A stretch of DNA of 64,000 bases from Selaginella moellendorffii (Eukaryota; Plantae; Lycopodiophyta), in NCBI RefSeq assembly GCF_000143415.4, contig NW_003314353.1:276140-340139 (forward strand), written 5' to 3'. The notes beneath the pieces were generated by a model. The model saw only the letters and a list, made by a program, of their open reading frames with translations. It did no database searches and was not told the origin of the DNA. Both the position numbers and the translations under genes were made by a program. Below are positions 2,712 to 10,560 of this stretch, piece by piece. The first letter of the stretch is position 1. Each line of letters opens with the position of its first letter.

Positions 2712-4783
2712 TGCGAGCCCTTTGCTCGTCTCGGTTCTAGGAAGCGCTGGAGTGGACGAACGTCGCGCTGTGGAGAGTAAGTACGTGCTCACTTGCACAT
2801 GAATCCTTTGTTCAATTTCTTTTTCCTTTGCATTTTGTATGGTTTTCATACTGGCAAACCGTGTACGCTATGCGCTCAGCTCAACGCCAGGACGCTTCCC
2901 ATTCAGCCTCCAAAACGCTGCGCACCTTGAGCGCCATCTCCTCGCCTCTCTCCGCAGCAGCGCCTAAGGGACAGTCTGCTGGATGGCTCATGCTCGATCT
3001 GAGAAAGATCGCGATGAATGAGAGAGCTGCGATCACAAGAAACTTGGTTGTTTTATGCCATGTTTTAATAATTCTCCTGGTGATGTTCAGGACATCGTTT
3101 AATCCAACAGGTTGTGGATGCTGCAGTGCTGCTCCGGGGAACGAACTGGTGCTGGAGCGGTAAAGATTGCTGTCGACATGGTGGACCAGCGCCTTTTTAC
3201 CATTAGTTATTTTATTTTGTTGACCGTTGACATAGGTTTTTGGAGACGGAATTAGAATGTAGATAATCTAATTTTATACCTACAACCTTGACAATTAATT
3301 TTAGGTCGGTAATGATAACCACTTTATTGCTTGTGCTTAACTAAGAATACACACAAACAAGTGGGCACTTGGACTAATCATCATATAGAATATTGCTTCT
3401 CCAAGTGGAGGTCCTCCTAACATCACTCATAAATATCATATAATCATTGACTACAGCTCCACTGGGAAAAGAATTATCACAAATAGTTGGAAATTTGTTT
3501 GACTAGAATCCAGAGCTAATCCCAGTCATCATCATCTCAAGAACATGGTGTTTAGTTTCAAAGATTCCAAAGATGTGTTAATTTTTTAACTATCAAAACA
3601 CAAATAATTTAGATAATAAGCACATAATAAAAAGTATAACAAAATTTTATTCTTCGCTCAAAATTTTAATTATGGAAAAATTAATTTCATACCTTTATCT
3701 TATCCTCTATAATACCTAATATTTTTTAATAGCACTATAGAATCTTTAATAATGTTTTTTCTGTTCTGTAAATACACAATGTTTTAACATGCTCTATTTG
3801 AGTGAAATATTATAATTCCAACTTCACAATGCTATAGATGGCATGGTTCTACCAACAAGGAAAATCTAATGTACTATCACCCACTTTTCTTGTAAAGGTC
3901 ACTAAAAGGGTGATTCTTATGTTTTTGAATTTTTCTCAGCTTCTTTACAGCTTAGATCAAGATGCTCCACCACCTCCTAGTAGTGATCGAGAATGGTTGA
4001 GACAATCCTGTGCCACTTCTCAAGCCTCGTCTGCTATCATAATTTTCTTGTGCATCGTGGTGAGGTAGATTTTATTCCAATTTGTCAAGCTTGGACATAT
4101 TTTGTCCTCACCTTATGGCAGTAACTCATCCCTATTGCCTTTTTTTCATCCTTTCTCCCTCATTGCGTTTCATATGTTTTCTTCTTCACCTGCTAAGTAC
4201 CACACGCATGTTACCTGACACCATCTAACAAAAAAGTTGCGTAAAGCAGTGTCCAAGCTGTCCGATCCCTTGTTACCGATGTTGACACAGTAGGATCGGA
4301 GCGGAGAGACAGTGGGAAATCATGTGGAAACACTTGTTTTCTCTTTTCATTGTGGAACATATGTTTTTTTAGGGAAGGCAATGTGGTGCAATTTGTTCCT
4401 GATACTCTATTTTCTTTTATCTATAACAAGTCTAACTCCTCTGTTTATGTAAATTGAAACCATTACCTTATTGTCAAATGCCCAACTTGCATTTGTATTT
4501 TCCACACTATTAGACTTTCATACGCAGATCATAACCACCATTCTGGGTGATTCAACAATAGCCACACTGACAAGTAGATCTAGAACAATAGCTTGATCTC
4601 ATTCAAGAGATACACAAGGCCGTCTGGAGCTAGTCCCCTTGCCACTGACTGTAAAAACATCTATCTTTATATATGATATACATTATGATTTTAATTACAG
4701 ATTATTCACTTTATTTATGTTGATTCTACATCTTGATGAAGCTACTAAATTTCAAGATTATTAAGAAAGAAATTAAAAATTAG

Positions 4784-5032
4784 TTAAAAGTGTAACACTA
4801 TCAAAAGGATCTCTAGTATAAAATATATATATGAACACTATATCAAACTATAAAACTGTAACAACGATGCATTTTATTCAATAATCTTAGCCATATAGGA
4901 TTTAATAATTAGCATCAAACTTAGTATGTCTATGGTTGTTAAAATGTGCGTAGGGAAACTACTTTTATAGCCGAAAACGATCATATATGTTTTTTTATAC
5001 TAGAGATCTTTTTGATAGTGTTACACTTTTAA
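4784..5032. mobile_element. MITE-like element with ~50-bp terminal inverted repeats
   Basis: 4784-4833 TTAAAAGTGTAACACTATCAAAAGGATCTCTAGTATAAAA... is the near-perfect reverse complement of 4981-5032; AT-rich non-coding interior. Confidence 0.65.
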
Positions 5033-5051
5033 AGCGCAATTGGCATGTCAA

Positions 5052-5070
5052 AAACCCTAAACCCTAAACC
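5052..5070 (+). repeat. Short interstitial plant telomere-like repeat / telo-box (AAACCCT)x2.7
   Basis: AAACCCTAAACCCTAAACC. Confidence 0.6.
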
Positions 5071-5614
5071 TGTTCTACGCGGGCAGTGAGACAAAATTTT
5101 GCTGATTTCTCTATAGTTTCTTCAAGGGCCTTGAAAGACCAGATTAACAAGAAAACCTCGCTTTTGACAAAGCTAGTCATTGTTTGCAGCTTCACCATGA
5201 TTCTCGAGATCAAAAAGTTATTATTTTAGATTTAAAATAATCGCCTTGTTCATGCATTTAGCTGTTATATGTTGGTTTTCTTTCCTTTGTTGCCGGTGGT
5301 GTTCTTCCTGCTTTTCCGTTGCTATTGATAATTCCCGGTGATCCTAATGAAATGGCTGGAGATTTTCTCGCTCTGCTTGGCAACGATGCTGGTTTTGAAG
5401 TCTTGATGGTGCTCGCCGACTGGAAGGGCCTGGCAGCAGCAGTGCCATGGAAAAACAGGAGGGGCACAGTCAAGACCACAACCACATAATCTATCCTTGA
5501 TATCTCCGTTTCCAGGGCAGGAGAAGCCTAGAAAAAAACTTTCGAGTGACTGCTAGAAAACTAGGAGCGTTGAGTTTATTGATCATATCAAAGCATGAGG
5601 TTTTTAGAGTGTTT

Positions 5615-6106
5615 CTAACAAGAAGAAGGAAGTTTCAGTTCACTTTCAATGCCTTCCTTCCACTGCTTAAGCGGCGGCCTCAAATCCTCCAGCGACGAAA
5701 TCCCTTCGAGCAGCGGCAGTAGCTTGATCAAATTCTTCTCGCGCTCTTCCTCCTCCATGCTCCACTCCGAAAAGGGCACAACCGCCAAGCCATTCTCCTC
5801 ATTGCCCGCAAACGCGAGTGGATTGTCGTCTATGGCCACCACTCTTCTCAAATCCTTTCCCAAAATCTCCAGCGGCTTGGTGCCCCGGACGCAAGAATCA
5901 TTGTAGAGGCGGCGCGCGACATTCACTTTGAGAATGTGGTCGATGATCCGATCCGCGCGCTCTCGGTTGCCGGATGTGAACACGACGATCTCGTAGAGTT
6001 TGCTTACTCTGGCCAGGAATTCATCCAGCCCCGGCCGCTTGGTCGCCCTTCCACATACCAGCGTGTTGTCGATGTCCAGCACAAGCGTCGGCTTGGAGCT
6101 CTCCAT
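5615..6106 (-). CDS. Minimal NIF/FCP1-SCP family HAD phosphatase (163 aa, intronless)
   Basis: TLVLDIDNTLV (DxDxT), KRPGLDEFL, YEIVVFTSG, RRLY..SC, K.L..LGKDL..VVAIDDNP and L..LLPLLE motifs. Confidence 0.9.
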   Translation of the reverse strand: MESSKPTLVLDIDNTLVCGRATKRPGLDEFLARVSKLYEIVVFTSGNRERADRIIDHILKVNVARRLYNDSCVRGTKPLEILGKDLRRVVAIDDNPLAFAGNEENGLAVVPFSEWSMEEEEREKNLIKLLPLLEGISSLEDLRPPLKQWKEGIESELKLPSSC

Positions 6107-6181
6107 ACCGCTACCCTAAAAATTTAAACCCTAGATTCTAGGGCATATCCGTTTTTCTTCTTCCTCTTGAGAACTTTGGCA

Positions 6182-7015
6182 ATGGCAATGGCAAAGGCGC
6201 AGGTTTTGGGAGCTGGAAAGTACGGAACCGTGTACGCCGCAGGAGAATCGATGGCGCTCAAGGTCGGAAAGGCGGGCGCGGGCTTGGATTACGAGTATTC
6301 CACTCTCGAAAAGATTTCGCTAGCTTGGAGCGCCAAACAAGATCGGGGAGTCTCGGTACCGCGGCCGCTGGGTTTTTTCGTGTCGGCAGAGAATTTCGCG
6401 ACGGCGGAGGGCGGGCAGGCTTTGATCCAGGGAGAAATCGTCGCCGACAAGGATGAGCCGTGTTTTCTCATGGACCGCGTATTTCCGTTGCCTGTGCTTC
6501 TTTGGGACGCTGGCGCTGAGGGTTTGACGACTGGGCCGCCCAAGATTTGCAAGCTCTACCTCTGCGGACGCGAATTTCCGATAATGGATCCAAGCCCGCG
6601 CTCTAAGTACGGGTTCGTGGACTGGGACACGGCGGAGAGAATGGGCATGGACACGGCCGAGCTTGCGCGCAGCATGGGCGAATTCCTGGGCTTTCTTCAC
6701 TTTGAAATGCTGGTGGATGGCAGGGATGTCGAATTCTACTTGGGCTCCGATGCCGCGACGACGAAATCCACGATCGCATCGCTCTTCTGCCTCGACTTCG
6801 GAGTGGTGAAATCCTTCGATGCCGGGAAGAGTGTGGATGTGGAGGTAGCCGCTACTGTCCTTGCCGGGGACGACCTTCCCCCAAACACCATCACGTATAC
6901 GCCCAAGCCTGGGAGCCGGGGTTGGGAGTCCTTCCGCGAGGGTTATCTCCGTGCTGCGACAGACCAGGAGCTAGCGCGCAAGGTTCTTGAACGGGTTCTC
7001 GAGCGTTCCAAATGA
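6182..7015 (+). CDS. DUF3669-type protein-kinase-like protein (intronless)
   Basis: Gly loop LGAGKYGTVY, MALK lysine, EY helix-C, LHFEMLVDGRDVEFYLG, LFCLDFG and YTPKP...WESFREGYL resemble fungal DUF3669 proteins. First ATG at 6182. Confidence 0.75.
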   Translation: MAMAKAQVLGAGKYGTVYAAGESMALKVGKAGAGLDYEYSTLEKISLAWSAKQDRGVSVPRPLGFFVSAENFATAEGGQALIQGEIVADKDEPCFLMDRVFPLPVLLWDAGAEGLTTGPPKICKLYLCGREFPIMDPSPRSKYGFVDWDTAERMGMDTAELARSMGEFLGFLHFEMLVDGRDVEFYLGSDAATTKSTIASLFCLDFGVVKSFDAGKSVDVEVAATVLAGDDLPPNTITYTPKPGSRGWESFREGYLRAATDQELARKVLERVLERSK

Positions 7016-7197
7016 TTTTTAGGGTTCTAACGGACACTTAGAGGTGAGATGAGCCACTTGACACAGAAAAATTCATAGTTTCGAAACTTCGACTGGCAAT
7101 GTAGAAATTGTGTATAGCTCGCTAGAAGAAATCTCCACTAATATCCGGAATGAAAAATTCATAGCTTTGGAACTTCGCGCTTTCCCGACGATTCCTG

Positions 7198-8866
7198 TTA
7201 ACTTGCCACTGCTGGCGACGGCCCGTTTGCGTGATTTGGAGCGTTATTGTTGTTGGAGCTGCTGTTGTTGCTGTAGTAGCCTCTACCGCGACGATTTCCT
7301 CCACTTCCATAGTAGCTATTGCGTTGGTAGTAGCCACTCTGATCGTAGTACTGGCCACCACCGTTCCCTGCGTTACCACCGCCTCGGTTACCATTTGCCG
7401 GTGCGTAGTTACCGCCGCCGCGATAGCCTCTACCGCCACCACGGCCACGTCCACGAGGATAGTTAGCACCACCGCCACCGCCAACGTTACCGCCGCCGCC
7501 GCCACGGTTTCCTCTAAACTTCTGCTGGAATCCTTGTTGCGGTTGATGTTGGCGAGGAGTGGTTTCATCGGGTTGTCGTTGGTCCTCGGCTGGCTGGGCT
7601 TCCTCGTGAGGCAAGCTCTTGATTGGATTCACGTCCAGCTAGAAAAACCATAAATCTCAGCCTCTAAAACATGAAAGATGAAGCTAAACCTGAAAGGCCT
7701 CGGAATTGGCCCCGGAGCTGTCGGAGACGTTTTCGGTGGGAGCGTCGCCATTTACGTAGTGTTCCTGAGGGACCTGAAAGTTATGCGAACTATAAGCTTC
7801 CAAGGTTGAAAACTTTACCCCAAGCTCGGGTCCAAACTGTCCCACTGCGATCTCTGATGTTACAGTCTGCAGCTCAGGCGTCATGGTGAAGTACTCGGTC
7901 GCCAATATCCTGTTTAGTCTGTCTCGCAGCTCAGTGTCTATGAGAAAAACAAGAACAAAGTTAAGGAAAAACACGAAGGAAAAAACACGAGAGCCAGTGG
8001 ATACATGTCACGTTGAGGATGTTGGCGTCGATGATCGCGTCCGAGTTGAGCAGCCAGTGTCTCGCATGAGCGATACAGGCCTGGAGAGCGTCCCGGTGCG
8101 ATAGCGTCGTGTTTGGCGGTCGAGAAGTCATGAGCGATCCAAACGCAGCCAGGGCGTCCAAGTCGGCGTCGGTGAGATGCGAAGTGGAATCGTCGGTGAC
8201 GAGATCGTAGGACAGGCACGAAACTCTCTCGTGGTACTTGACAGTCCGCATGAACGAGTGAGCCTCCCCCTGGGACTGGACGTCGAAGAGCAGCGCAAAG
8301 TAGAGGAGCTGGATGAGCTCCAGCATGAGATGCTCGTCCAGTCCAGCAACGCTGCCACTGTCAACCGGAACTTCGATCTTCTCGTTCTCCTCGGTAGCAG
8401 CAGCGGGAGTAGCAGCAGCAGCAGCGGCAAAGGCAGGATCACCACCACCACCACCAACATTGTCAGCCTCGCCACTACCAGCATTCTCCAGGGTCTCATT
8501 GCTGGCCTCCTCCGACTCGGTTCTGGCCTCCTCCAAGTTCTCGCTGGAAGCCACTCCAGAAACTTGCTCCTCCTTGGTAGCAATCCATTCCTTCTCCTTC
8601 TCGGCAATCTCCTCCCTCACCGCGACGAGCAAAGGTTGCCGGAGGCGATCATACTCCTCCATCAGCGTCAGCACCTGGACCTTGCTCTTGAGAACATCCT
8701 CCTGCTCCTTGTTGATAGCCTTGCCTTTCTCCTTGGCCTCCTCGAGCTGGACGATTCGATTGTACTTCTTCTTGAGCGCTCGCAGCCGCTTGTTCATCAT
8801 CGTCAACACCGGCCCATCCTTTCCACAGCTCGAATCCTCCACACCACTTACATCTAGAGCTGCCAT
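7198..8866 (-). CDS. Conserved plant coiled-coil + glycine/RGG-rich protein (caprin-like architecture); exons 8866-8005, 7937-7690, 7638-7198
   Basis: GPVLTMMNKRLRALKKKYNRI, HERVSCLSYDLVTDD and YTELRDRLNRILATEYFT; C-terminal RGG/NYY tail; GT-AG introns 7938-8004 and 7639-7689. Confidence 0.85.
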
Positions 8867-9500
8867 CTCTCTCTCTCCCTCCCCCTTTTACTTTTCCTTC
8901 TACAAACTAAGAAAAGACCTCGTTAGAATGGAAGAACACCTCACAGCTCACAGCTCCATCTCCTCTCTCGAGATTTCGCTCGCTCGCTCGCTCGCCCGCC
9001 CTAAATCGAAGACCAGACCTTCCAAACAGTAGCGAAAGCGAGGAGAATCCGCGCGCCCAGCTCGCGCCGAGAGCCGCGCCCTTGCAATGCCGCCGCTCTC
9101 GCACAGAGGATGAGGAACGCGACGGAACCCTAAAAATTTGTGACGCCCAATTTTTTGGAGGAAGGGATATACCCGAATCAGCCTAATTCGCTTAGCTCGT
9201 ATGGTTATCAAAGAATATTCATCGCATCGTATTTACACAGGCAAGCCACAGGGGAAAAAATTCAAGCAAGAAATAAAAATCACGAACCTCTGTGATGTAA
9301 AACTTGAGCTTGAGCTGGGCTTGCTTCTCCCGCCAGATTTTTTTTACTCAGTTTTTTTCTCTCGGTTTTTCTTTGTTTTTCTTCTTTTTTTTGCCAGTTT
9401 TTTTTCTCCAATACATATTTTTTTCATCTTTTTTCTTTCCTATCGATTATCCTTTTTTCCCTAGTACCTGCTTTCGAGCAGCAATGGAGAGATAAATAGA

Positions 9501-10560
9501 TCAATAGTAAGGCCTGTATCGCATGGGCCTCCGGAATCGAGGAACTTTTCTGGAGATCACAGAAGCAAGGGCGTGAGTGATAGATCGAGCAAAGGTTTGC
9601 AACTACGTACCCAAAGCCGTAAGGATATGGATAGGATGGGTAAGGCATGTAAGGCCTTCTCGGGAAGTAAGGCATATAAGGAGCTCCAAAGCCGCCACGG
9701 CCGCGGTGCTGCTTGAGTCCAGGAACATTAGTCCGCTTAGCAGCAACCTGTGAGCAATCCGAGTGAGTAAAAGGAGATACCAAAACACCGACGGAAATCC
9801 TTACCTTGATAGGCCGACCGTGAAGCTCTGATTCGTTTAGTATGAGAGCGTTCTGGACAGCTTCGACTTCCAGGAACTCGACATAGGCAAATCTGTAAGC
9901 AGAGAAACGATCATCAGCATTAGAACCGGCACAGGGAAACGTTTTTGCGAAGATTTACCCCTTGGGCTGTCCGAACTTGTCAGTTAAAATAGTAACCCGG
10001 TTAACAGTGCCACAGGATTGAAAGTGCTGTTGGACTTCCTCTGGTGTGCACGAATAATCCACCTAAGAACATACCACTCACTAAGTTCCAAGGCAACGAG
10101 AAGAGAAGAAAAGAAAACTTACGTTTCCAACATACACCGAGCGAGCATCGGCTTCTTCCTTGCTCGCTTGTTGGGCAGCAGCAGCCGGATCTACAAGCAC
10201 ACAAACACAAGAACACGAAATAAGCGACACAAAATCTACGAAGTTACACCAAGTGTGACCGAAAAATCTCACCTTGCCCAGCGCCCATTTCTTTCTCGAC
10301 CTTGGCTTGCATATCACGCAATGCAGCGGCCTCGTCCTCCATTTCCTTGAGGCGTTTCTTCATCTCTTCCAGCTCCTGGAACAATCGCAATGAGCAATCG
10401 ATTCATCCATACCCTAGGAAGGCGCTGAGCTTACCGTGGAGGTGGGATCGTCGCCGCCAGCATCGTCGCCTTGGTCGCCCTCGAGATCGCCCTCCACTTC
10501 CTCTGGAATCTCGCCGCCATAGACCTCGTGCTCGTCCTCCACTCCATGTGTCGCCTCCAT
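9501..10560 (-). CDS. PABN: Nuclear polyadenylate-binding protein 2 (PABN), multi-exon
   Basis: [43 protein letters not shown] (KFGQPKG, FAYVEF), KRTNVPG and RPMRYRPYY* end. Confidence 0.92.

Follow-up and report, generated by a model that had tools for sequence, protein, structure and literature searches.

We analyzed two adjoining open reading frames in a window of 64,000 nucleotides of Selaginella moellendorffii DNA: a gene for a minimal phosphatase of the NIF/FCP-SCP-type HAD class on the reverse strand (positions 5615–6106, 163 amino acids, ATG at 6106; NIF from here on), and a gene for an atypical protein-kinase-like protein of the DUF3669 type, with a Bud32/RIO-like fold, on the forward strand (positions 6182–7015, 277 amino acids from the ATG at 6182; ORF2). 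The initial annotation, made from the sequence alone, had described both frames as intact and intronless, with start codons 75 bp apart and neighbors that mostly contain introns. The sequence agrees: both frames are open and uninterrupted, the gap between the two ATGs is exactly 75 bp (positions 6107–6181, 40% GC), and RNA contigs show three small introns in the neighboring gene on the reverse strand (positions 7058–9161). The two transcripts diverge from within the spacer: their contigs end at 6141 and 6183, which puts the 5′ ends no more than 41 bp from each other, and no transcript contig from 4 transcriptome-like runs covered positions 6142–6182. Short head-to-head spacers are usual in this region, where the TPM and RRM gene models, for example, are separated by 147 bp, so that the annotation's own caution that closeness is weak evidence was well placed.

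NIF matches the Pfam family PF03031 over profile positions 1–160 with 115.7 bits (cut-off 21.8, E = 2e-33), and is an allele of SELMODRAFT_415093 (99% identity to this S. moellendorffii protein). Its DxDxT signature reads DIDNT (residues 11–15, D11-I-D13-N-T15), and HAD motifs II to IV (T44 in FTSG, K77 in GTKP, and D93-D94 in IDDN) align with those of SCP1. The best matches among solved structures were human SCP1, SCP2, and CTDSPL (E = 2e-17). The FCP insertion domain, located between motif I and motif II, is absent, which leaves the protein 18 residues short of a second Selaginella NIF protein (that of locus L004, discussed below) and approximately 24 residues short of human SCP1; in the alignments to both proteins the gap lies directly after DxDxTLV. 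The earlier description of a stripped-down FCP1/SCP phosphatase that keeps its DxDxT motif was therefore accurate. A structure model of NIF built from a 4-sequence alignment was unusable (AF2, pLDDT 45).

ORF2 is absent from the protein collections searched, and a word-indexed protein search with it returned nothing. Searched against Pfam, including the DUF3669 model (PF12417), it had no match at E ≤ 1, and the same was true of its paralogue at L004. Homology searches recovered 56 homologues at E < 1e-3 (best E = 1.3e-13), the top ones aligning over the full length (residues 5–270) with E values of 1e-13 to 1e-8. PF12417 is present in 9 of the 10 best homologues, where it lies in the region aligned to ORF2 residues 215–261 (approximately). 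The assignment to DUF3669 made in the initial annotation thus holds as homology to carriers of PF12417 (E = 1e-13), but not as a match of ORF2 itself to that profile. The kinase landmarks of the protein are GAGKYG (residues 10–15), ALKV (25–28), DGRDVEF (179–185), and LDFG (204–207), followed by the C-terminal motif TPKPGSRGWESFREGYL (240–256). Residues G10, G12, K27, D179, E184, and D205, all present in ORF2, show no variation or at least 90% conservation across the family alignment. ORF2 keeps the glycine loop, the β3 lysine, the αC glutamate, the acidic residues of the catalytic loop (D179, D182, and E184), and the aspartate of DFG (D205), with DGRDVEF replacing the canonical HRDxxxxN. Because these active-site residues are retained, the product of the intact allele is predicted to be an ATP-binding enzyme with phosphotransfer activity.

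The N-lobe of ORF2 aligned to Raf and CK1 with E values of 2e-3 to 8e-2, and a sequence search of solved structures gave chance matches only. The AF2 model of the protein (pLDDT 89, pTM 0.89) adopts a bilobal kinase fold, which together with the located motifs confirms the earlier reading of kinase landmarks around an unusual DGRDVEF loop. With this model Foldseek found 138 kinase chains at E ≤ 1e-3, PRPK being the best, and VIA-align gave Z scores of 13.3–13.4 for Bud32, 11.7 for Rio1, 10.9 for Rio2, and about 10 for APH. By this analysis, the “DUF3669” proteins of fungi, green algae, and giant viruses are putative kinase-fold enzymes of a minimal, Bud32/RIO-like form, set apart by their DGRDxEF catalytic loop; we did not find this description in the literature searched. 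A complex prediction for ORF2 and NIF returned no answer (score 0.00) and is evidence neither way.

The intact form of ORF2 is not the only one. A 353-bp segment (positions 6617–6969 on the forward strand) that codes for DGRDVEF, LDFG, and the C-terminal DUF3669-type motif occurs in this haplotype only; in the reference haplotype (GL377591.1, by blastn and alignment) it is deleted, which shifts the frame and places a stop 6 codons past residue 145. The truncation falls upstream of the catalytic loop in the reference haplotype and in all transcripts seen. There is also a 7-bp deletion on the forward strand (positions 6495–6502), with a frameshift near residue 103, which alignment, contigs, and translation show for the reference allele and run X1 but not for run X3. 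The joint of the larger deletion (6616 to 6970) was found in RNA contigs of both X1 and X3.

We treated the 4 runs as RNA because GT-AG introns of the neighboring gene are spliced and the stretch 3500–5270 is silent. NIF was expressed in all of them at a depth of 11–150. Its contigs (5558–6125, 5565–6141, 5567–6124, and, in X1, 5640–6092) have no mismatches to the window and together span positions 5558–6141 on the reverse strand, from at least 35 nt above the ATG to approximately 50–57 nt beyond the stop codon. ORF2 expression was weak (2 of the 4 runs, depth 4–6), and the contigs of both runs carry the deletion joint. No contig from the 4 runs covered positions 6652–6848 of ORF2; contigs drop rare variants, and the sampled plants may lack the intact allele. 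Instead of a weak promoter, the degradation of messages that stop prematurely could explain why ORF2 transcript is scarce. Co-expression of the pair, to which the initial annotation had looked for support, was consequently not observed. These data identify the locus as a segregating loss-of-function polymorphism of the kinase gene, of which this haplotype carries the intact form. Since the reference haplotype and the observed transcripts miss the catalytic half, the kinase gene appears to be dispensable or decaying; NIF is a maintained, well-expressed gene. The intact/deleted polymorphism provides a natural knockout for function tests.

Altogether, we favor the reading that the two are ordinary neighboring genes, that the spacer reflects tight spacing with divergent promoters, that the kinase gene is decaying, and that its family is not a fungal import; on balance this is probably correct. 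The locus would then consist of two adjoining single-exon genes in a compact genome, one encoding an expressed minimal Asp-based NIF/FCP-SCP phosphatase and the other a putative atypical kinase-fold protein whose family has multiple copies in Selaginella. The 75-bp head-to-head spacer would most simply be the usual tight spacing between separate divergent promoters. An ordinary neighbor pair is more likely than a toxin-antidote cassette because the kinase gene is intact here and broken in the reference haplotype. Against this, presence/absence of the “toxin” is also expected of a selfish toxin-antidote element.

The initial annotation had proposed a functional module of the writer/eraser or toxin/antidote type. 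In such a module the kinase would phosphorylate a target or itself, NIF would reverse this, and selection would keep the two genes linked. The head-to-head arrangement with its short spacer and closely placed transcript starts, and the intact active-site residues of the kinase in this allele, are consistent with such a module. So is a second case of adjacency, since a NIF gene lies directly upstream of the DUF3669 paralogue at L004 (SELMODRAFT_410892), approximately 1.4 kb away after discounting an intervening 4.6-kb copia-like element. The NIF proteins of the two loci are only 31–37% identical, no closer than the window NIF is to human SCP1, and the adjacency is thus not simply a recent segmental copy. 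Chance would be an unlikely cause of this adjacency provided that NIF genes were rare; however, NIF domains are presumably common in the S. moellendorffii genome through a transposon family, which would raise the rate of chance adjacency.

Other observations argue against the module. NIF continues to be expressed although both the reference haplotype and the transcripts have a truncated kinase, and the L004 kinase is damaged too: its 5′ end borders directly on the copia-like element, and upstream of its glycine loop there is no in-frame ATG. (Around this element we found no target-site duplication, and its direct repeats are only 102 bp.) The orientation also differs, being divergent in the window and tandem at L004. 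Of the two further Selaginella loci examined, one (L004) has a NIF neighbor, contrary to the initial annotation's refuting case of copies that are never linked to NIF genes. A third Selaginella paralogue, at L003, has no NIF gene within 10 kb, and a duplicate of NIF 53 kb away (89% amino acid identity, sharing with the window only positions 5652–6119) has no kinase gene beside it. Outside Selaginella, a NIF neighbor was found at 0 of 55 loci of DUF3669-type homologues (Klebsormidium, Haematococcus, a giant-virus-like contig, 50 metagenomic homologues, and the loci L058 and L059), and no fusions of family members with phosphatase domains were found. With the unequal expression of the two genes, these results give no positive evidence for a toxin/antidote or selfish cassette, and we regard a functional module as unlikely.

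We also considered a common viral source, according to which both genes are DNA of a giant-virus (Nucleocytoviricota) relative, acquired together or repeatedly, and their linkage is the gene order of the donor. Such an origin would account for genes that are intronless, unannotated, multi-copy, and decaying. The top matches of ORF2 come from Chlorokybus, Haematococcus, Klebsormidium, the Selaginella paralogues, and virus-like metagenomic proteins, and in the tree a group with support 95/87 unites ORF2, the L004 paralogue, and two giant-virus-like metagenomic proteins, although this placement is uncertain because the branches are long. The contigs of these two proteins are short, gene-dense, and intronless, and carry FNIP/LRR repeats and DUF7197. 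Among viral proteins, the best structural matches to ORF2 were proteins from giant-virus MAGs; that of Pithovirus LCPAC001 (TM 0.70/0.77, E = 2e-13) ranked well above solved kinases. When matches of ORF2 were ranked by language-model features, 64 among the top 100 fell in unnamed clusters, the best of which is mostly Nucleocytoviricota, and the cluster nearest to NIF is a 155-amino acid giant-virus NIF (0.93), an embedding score being the only viral link of this gene.

A possible further link is the functionally uncharacterized EFJ10148 family of Maumus et al. (2014), which has 23 copies in Selaginella and whose homologues are restricted to a few fungi and a single chlorovirus; many of the copies are unannotated, and the origin was judged horizontal but unresolved (PMC4083422). 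Compared by description only, the EFJ10148 and ORF2 families are alike in being multi-copy in Selaginella, in having fungal and viral homologues, and in including unannotated copies, and they may be the same family. On the other side, no relative of the kinase (two alignments) or of NIF was confirmed among IMG/VR viral contigs, where only pattern matches were obtained, and NIF lay beside the kinase in none of the viral or virus-like contigs examined. Composition gave no signal of foreign origin, the GC3 values of the two ORFs (0.70 and 0.68) lying inside the range of the neighboring genes. The pair is flanked by syntenic plant genes, and no further viral hallmark gene was found among the flanking genes examined. 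A shared giant-virus origin of both genes is, accordingly, quite doubtful.

Horizontal transfer of the kinase-like gene from a filamentous fungus to Selaginella, suggested by the initial annotation and by a family that is far largest in Ascomycota (the profile-search matches listed are all ascomycete, mostly from Fusarium, Penicillium, and similar genera) with Selaginella as the only land plant among the named matches, is highly improbable and was rejected, because Ascomycota form a separate clade that excludes ORF2 (100/99), ORF2 is less than 30% identical to every fungal protein compared, and its top matches are algal, Selaginella, and virus-like. A canonical Selaginella paralogue, LOC112342192, is 44–46% identical to green-algal proteins.

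A broader conjecture, which we hold to be distinctly improbable, is that Selaginella DUF3669-type kinases are repeatedly linked to a phosphatase (NIF, at two loci) in small, dispensable toxin-antidote or signaling cassettes that are polymorphic for presence/absence and possibly derive from giant-virus relatives. Should the recurrent phosphatase linkage hold in a genome-wide test, it would suggest that these uncharacterized kinases and the phosphatases are related through a substrate, and perhaps that a land plant carries a cassette of viral derivation. The S. moellendorffii gene set gains one unannotated gene, ORF2.

Both genes can be compared with known systems. NIF shares with SCP1/CTDSP1-type phosphatases (PF03031) the DxDxT motif, the motif II threonine, the motif III lysine, and the two aspartates of motif IV; unlike them, it is only 163 amino acids long, intronless, and devoid of an N-terminal extension. 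It also differs from FCP/SCP enzymes in missing the insertion domain that forms their CTD-binding pocket and, because this pocket-shaping domain is lost, NIF probably does not act on the CTD of RNA polymerase II in the manner of SCP1. ORF2 resembles Bud32/PRPK (KEOPS) and RIO kinases in its minimal C-lobe and in the absence of an activation segment, and the “IDFNQ” metal-binding loop of its family relatives recalls the IDxxQ loop of RIO. However, it has no significant sequence similarity to either, and where Bud32 and RIO have an HGDLxxxN loop it has D-G-R-D-V-E-F, with an invariant glutamate at the position of the kinase asparagine. Its C-terminal P.P...W..F...Y helix region is also distinctive, and its locus has no KEOPS or ribosome context. 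With the DUF3669 proteins of fungi, algae, and giant viruses ORF2 has in common the glycine loop, AxK, RLYLG, DGRDxEF, (I/L)DF, and the C-terminal W..F...Y. It differs from other DUF3669-type proteins in lacking the NFPL motif, in having DFG where they have DFNQ, and in carrying five extra residues within the NDPYYPRP motif, departures in which it resembles the L004 paralogue and the two virus-like proteins. The DUF3669 of the literature is an oligomerization domain of vertebrate KRAB zinc-finger proteins, a different protein context (PMC6923878). The pair is made up of known kinds of gene, of which ORF2 and NIF are new members.

The 2 intronless ORFs whose start codons were described in the initial annotation as lying 75 bp apart were both found: a NIF/FCP-type phosphatase ORF of 163 aa (5615-6106, reverse strand; NIF) and a DUF3669-type kinase-like ORF of 277 aa counted from the ATG at 6182 (6182-7015, forward strand; ORF2), with a TTG-initiated frame of ORF2 beginning at 6167. 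The spacer between the 2 ATGs (6107-6181, 75 bp) has a GC content of 40%. As also described, the neighbours mostly have introns: the adjoining gene (7058-9161, reverse strand), which has a Gly/Arg-rich C-terminal part, shows 3 tiny GT-AG introns of 51, 54, and 67 nt (7639-7689, approximately 7764-7817, and 7938-8004) in RNA contigs from 4 of 4 runs. All 4 runs carry a 3-nt deletion at 8341 of this gene relative to the window, and approximately 40 nt separate its 3' end (approximately 7058) from the stop codon of ORF2. The caveat that other head-to-head pairs are also close holds, the TPM-phosphatase and RRM models of the reference annotation being 147 bp apart; short divergent spacers are normal in this genome region. 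The window and reference-assembly scaffold GL377591.1 align with approximately 98% identity, and the window is therefore another haplotype or assembly of S. moellendorffii. At 3366-5032, identity to the reference haplotype is approximately 89%, with several rearranged pieces; this segment is not transcribed in the 4 RNA runs, although a 197-aa gene model lacking Pfam domains is annotated there in the reference.

To follow expression, we used contigs from 4 runs of 4 studies, which behave as transcriptomes: they show the GT-AG introns of the neighbouring gene and are silent over 3500-5270. NIF contigs (approximately 5558-6141), identical to the window, were present in all 4 runs at a depth of 11-150, whereas ORF2 contigs were present in 2 of the 4 at a depth of 4-6, both with a joint 6616->6970, and no contig covered 6652-6848. 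This joint is not an intron, since its ends are GT..GA and the same junction occurs in the reference DNA. Thus, NIF is robustly expressed and the ORF2 messages seen are weak and truncated only, so that co-expression of the 2 genes was not borne out; contigs miss rare variants, and premature-stop ORF2 messages may be degraded. As the contigs end at 6141 and 6183, both 5' ends lie within the 75-bp spacer. Compared with the window, the reference ORF2 allele has an in-frame indel of 6 bp at its start and lacks 7 bp near residue 103 as well as 353 bp corresponding to window 6617-6969; its translation stops after approximately 110 residues. The 353-bp deletion alone produces a stop 6 codons past residue 145, so that neither the catalytic loop nor DFG is reached. 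Since the segment lost from the reference carries, in frame, the motifs most conserved in the family, the deletion is derived and the ancestral state is that of the window. At least 3 ORF2 alleles exist: the intact window allele, one with both the 353-bp and 7-bp deletions and reference-type SNPs (one ORF2-covering run), and one with the 353-bp deletion and window-type SNPs (the other run).

We consider that the 2 genes are probably an ordinary divergent neighbour pair of a compact genome, in which a maintained and expressed mini-NIF lies beside a dispensable, decaying member of an atypical-kinase family with multiple copies. That they form a true kinase-phosphatase module appears doubtful. 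A recent NIF duplicate, SELMODRAFT_415083 (L002:10001-10534 on GL377591.1, 177 aa, 89% identity), is found 53 kb away from the NIF locus of the reference; its homology to the window is limited to the CDS (5652-6119), no kinase-like sequence lies beside it, and no gene is called in its 10 kb upstream. NIF is also missing within 10 kb of the Selaginella paralogue LOC112342192, at the Klebsormidium, Haematococcus, and virus-like contig loci, from 50 metagenomic loci encoding ORF2-family members (NIF HMM), and from 2 further loci outside Selaginella (L058 and L059, Pfam), and none of the family members examined is fused to a phosphatase. The module reading is kept alive by a second adjacency at the SELMODRAFT_410892 locus (L004, GL377578.1), where a 273-aa intronless NIF ORF (PF03031 E 2e-36) lies upstream of the DUF3669-type paralogue on the same strand. 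Of the loci examined for the repeated pairing that the initial annotation proposed to test, only this one shows a linked NIF gene. The 2 genes of L004 are now 6 kb apart, or approximately 1.4 kb without the intervening 4.6-kb copia-like element (5211-9851), which has an intact 1358-aa gag-pol ORF (5535-9611, reverse strand) and 102-bp direct repeats that are 98% identical; a target-site duplication was not found around it. The element abuts the 5' end of the kinase ORF, and the ORF has no in-frame ATG ahead of its Gly-loop; this copy is probably disabled too. The annotated SELMODRAFT_410892 model (206 aa) does not contain the Gly-loop and lysine. Moreover, the L004 NIF is 31-37% identical to the window NIF, no closer than the latter is to human SCP1.

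ORF2 has no gene model in the reference annotation and no match in a word-indexed search of protein collections, and an exhaustive search of 1.84 billion representatives returned no protein more than 43% identical over matched stretches. Using phmmer, 56 relatives were detected at E<1e-3 (top E 1.3e-13, aligned residues 5-261). Its assignment to DUF3669 stood in part: PF12417 is present in 9 of the 10 best relatives, within the part aligning to the ORF2 C-terminal motif, and language-model features indicate that family as well (0.96-0.98), but Pfam gave no match to ORF2 itself even at E<=1. The kinase landmarks initially listed are present, namely GAGKYG (residues 10-15), ALKV (25-28), DGRDVEF (179-185), and LDFG (204-207), followed by the C-terminal motif TPKPGSRGWESFREGYL (240-256). 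A 39-sequence alignment gave a family signature consisting of a Gly-loop, the AxK lysine, a glutamate approximately 13 residues later, RLYLG, D-G/A-R-D-I/V-E-F, (I/L)-D-F, and, at the C-terminus, P.P...W..F...Y; E184 and D205 are invariant, and conservation reaches 90% or more at G10, G12, K27, and D179. Foldseek of the AlphaFold model (pLDDT 89, pTM 0.89) against the PDB returned only kinases, with PRPK/Bud32 on top, and an exhaustive structural search ranked Bud32 (Z 13.3-13.4), Rio1 (11.7), and Rio2 (10.9) before aminoglycoside and methylthioribose kinases (Z approximately 10). In a profile search of PDB sequences, the N-lobe aligned to Raf, Wee1, and CK1 with marginal E-values. ORF2 therefore has a minimal, atypical kinase fold and all residues for nucleotide binding and catalysis, with D179 or D182 as the candidate catalytic base, and is predicted to be an active kinase.

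Relatives of ORF2 occur in Selaginella (SELMODRAFT_410892 and LOC112342192), in the streptophyte and chlorophyte algae Chlorokybus (2 adjacent genes), Klebsormidium (2), and Haematococcus, and in chytrids, basidiomycetes, and numerous ascomycetes. The neighbouring Chlorokybus atmophyticus genes P002257 and P002258 encode proteins (P0003 and P0020) whose N-terminal extensions, of approximately 250 and 170 residues, match no Pfam domain. The Haematococcus lacustris gene (L006:10001-10925) lies within the span of an opposite-strand 1000-aa rhodanese-domain model, which suggests that it is nested or inserted. Co-acquisition of NIF and ORF2 from a giant-virus relative, which is compatible with a neighbour pair or a module, is in our view unlikely, although the tree, the structural matches, and the paper of Maumus et al. 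suggest it. The maximum-likelihood tree (38 sequences) joins ORF2 to the SELMODRAFT_410892 locus (84/51) and to 2 metagenomic proteins (95/87), a placement that is tentative because branches are long; the contigs of these 2 proteins are short and dense, with FNIP/LRR repeats and DUF7197, and look giant-virus-like. LOC112342192, 44-46% identical to Haematococcus and Klebsormidium proteins, groups with green-algal, chytrid, basidiomycete, and virus-like sequences. A gene-dense, intronless 23-kb metagenomic contig (L007, ENA ERZ25067493) encodes a DUF3669-type protein (P0006) together with an RNA polymerase Rpb1 split into 2 ORFs, an SNF2 helicase, and a hybrid histidine kinase, and probably comes from a giant-virus genome. 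The predicted viral structures most similar to ORF2 were giant-virus MAG proteins, with Pithovirus LCPAC001 (TM 0.70/0.77, E 2e-13) clearly above any solved kinase. The Selaginella family EFJ10148, of 23 copies and unknown function, has homologues only in a few fungi and one chlorovirus, its horizontal origin being left unresolved (Maumus et al. 2014, PMC4083422); compared by description only, it fits the ORF2 family. Against a viral source, no relatives of the ORF2 family or NIF were found in IMG/VR viral contigs, no viral hallmark genes were found near the pair, and GC3 gave no compositional sign of foreign origin (0.68-0.70 in NIF and ORF2 against 0.50-0.69 in neighbouring genes). The fungal transfer of ORF2 proposed initially is very improbable, as ORF2 is not placed inside fungi and Ascomycota form a clade of their own (100/99).

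As by-products, the neighbour-pair analysis yields an unannotated gene, ORF2, with a natural intact/deleted polymorphism, and recognises non-vertebrate "DUF3669" proteins as Bud32/RIO-like kinase-fold enzymes; the literature searched on DUF3669 treats only a vertebrate zinc-finger domain. NIF is 99% identical to S. moellendorffii SELMODRAFT_415093, and its description as a stripped-down FCP1/SCP HAD phosphatase with intact DxDxT was confirmed: PF03031 matches over the whole profile (115.7 bits, cut-off 21.8; E 2e-33), and DIDNT occupies residues 11-15. By language-model features, its closest cluster is a 155-aa giant-virus NIF (0.93), a likeness that is only a lead. Among solved structures, NIF is closest to human SCP1, SCP2, and CTDSPL (E 2e-17), followed by Tim50, CTDNEP1, and Fcp1. 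NIF shares the catalytic motifs of SCP1-type phosphatases, but lacks 10 residues after motif II and the insertion domain that FCP/SCP enzymes carry as 18-24 residues directly after DxDxTLV; the absence of this defining structural feature of the family suggests that NIF has another substrate. In ORF2, the catalytic loop is non-canonical, with an invariant Glu at the position where kinases usually have an Asn. Both NIF and ORF2 belong to already known kinds of gene.
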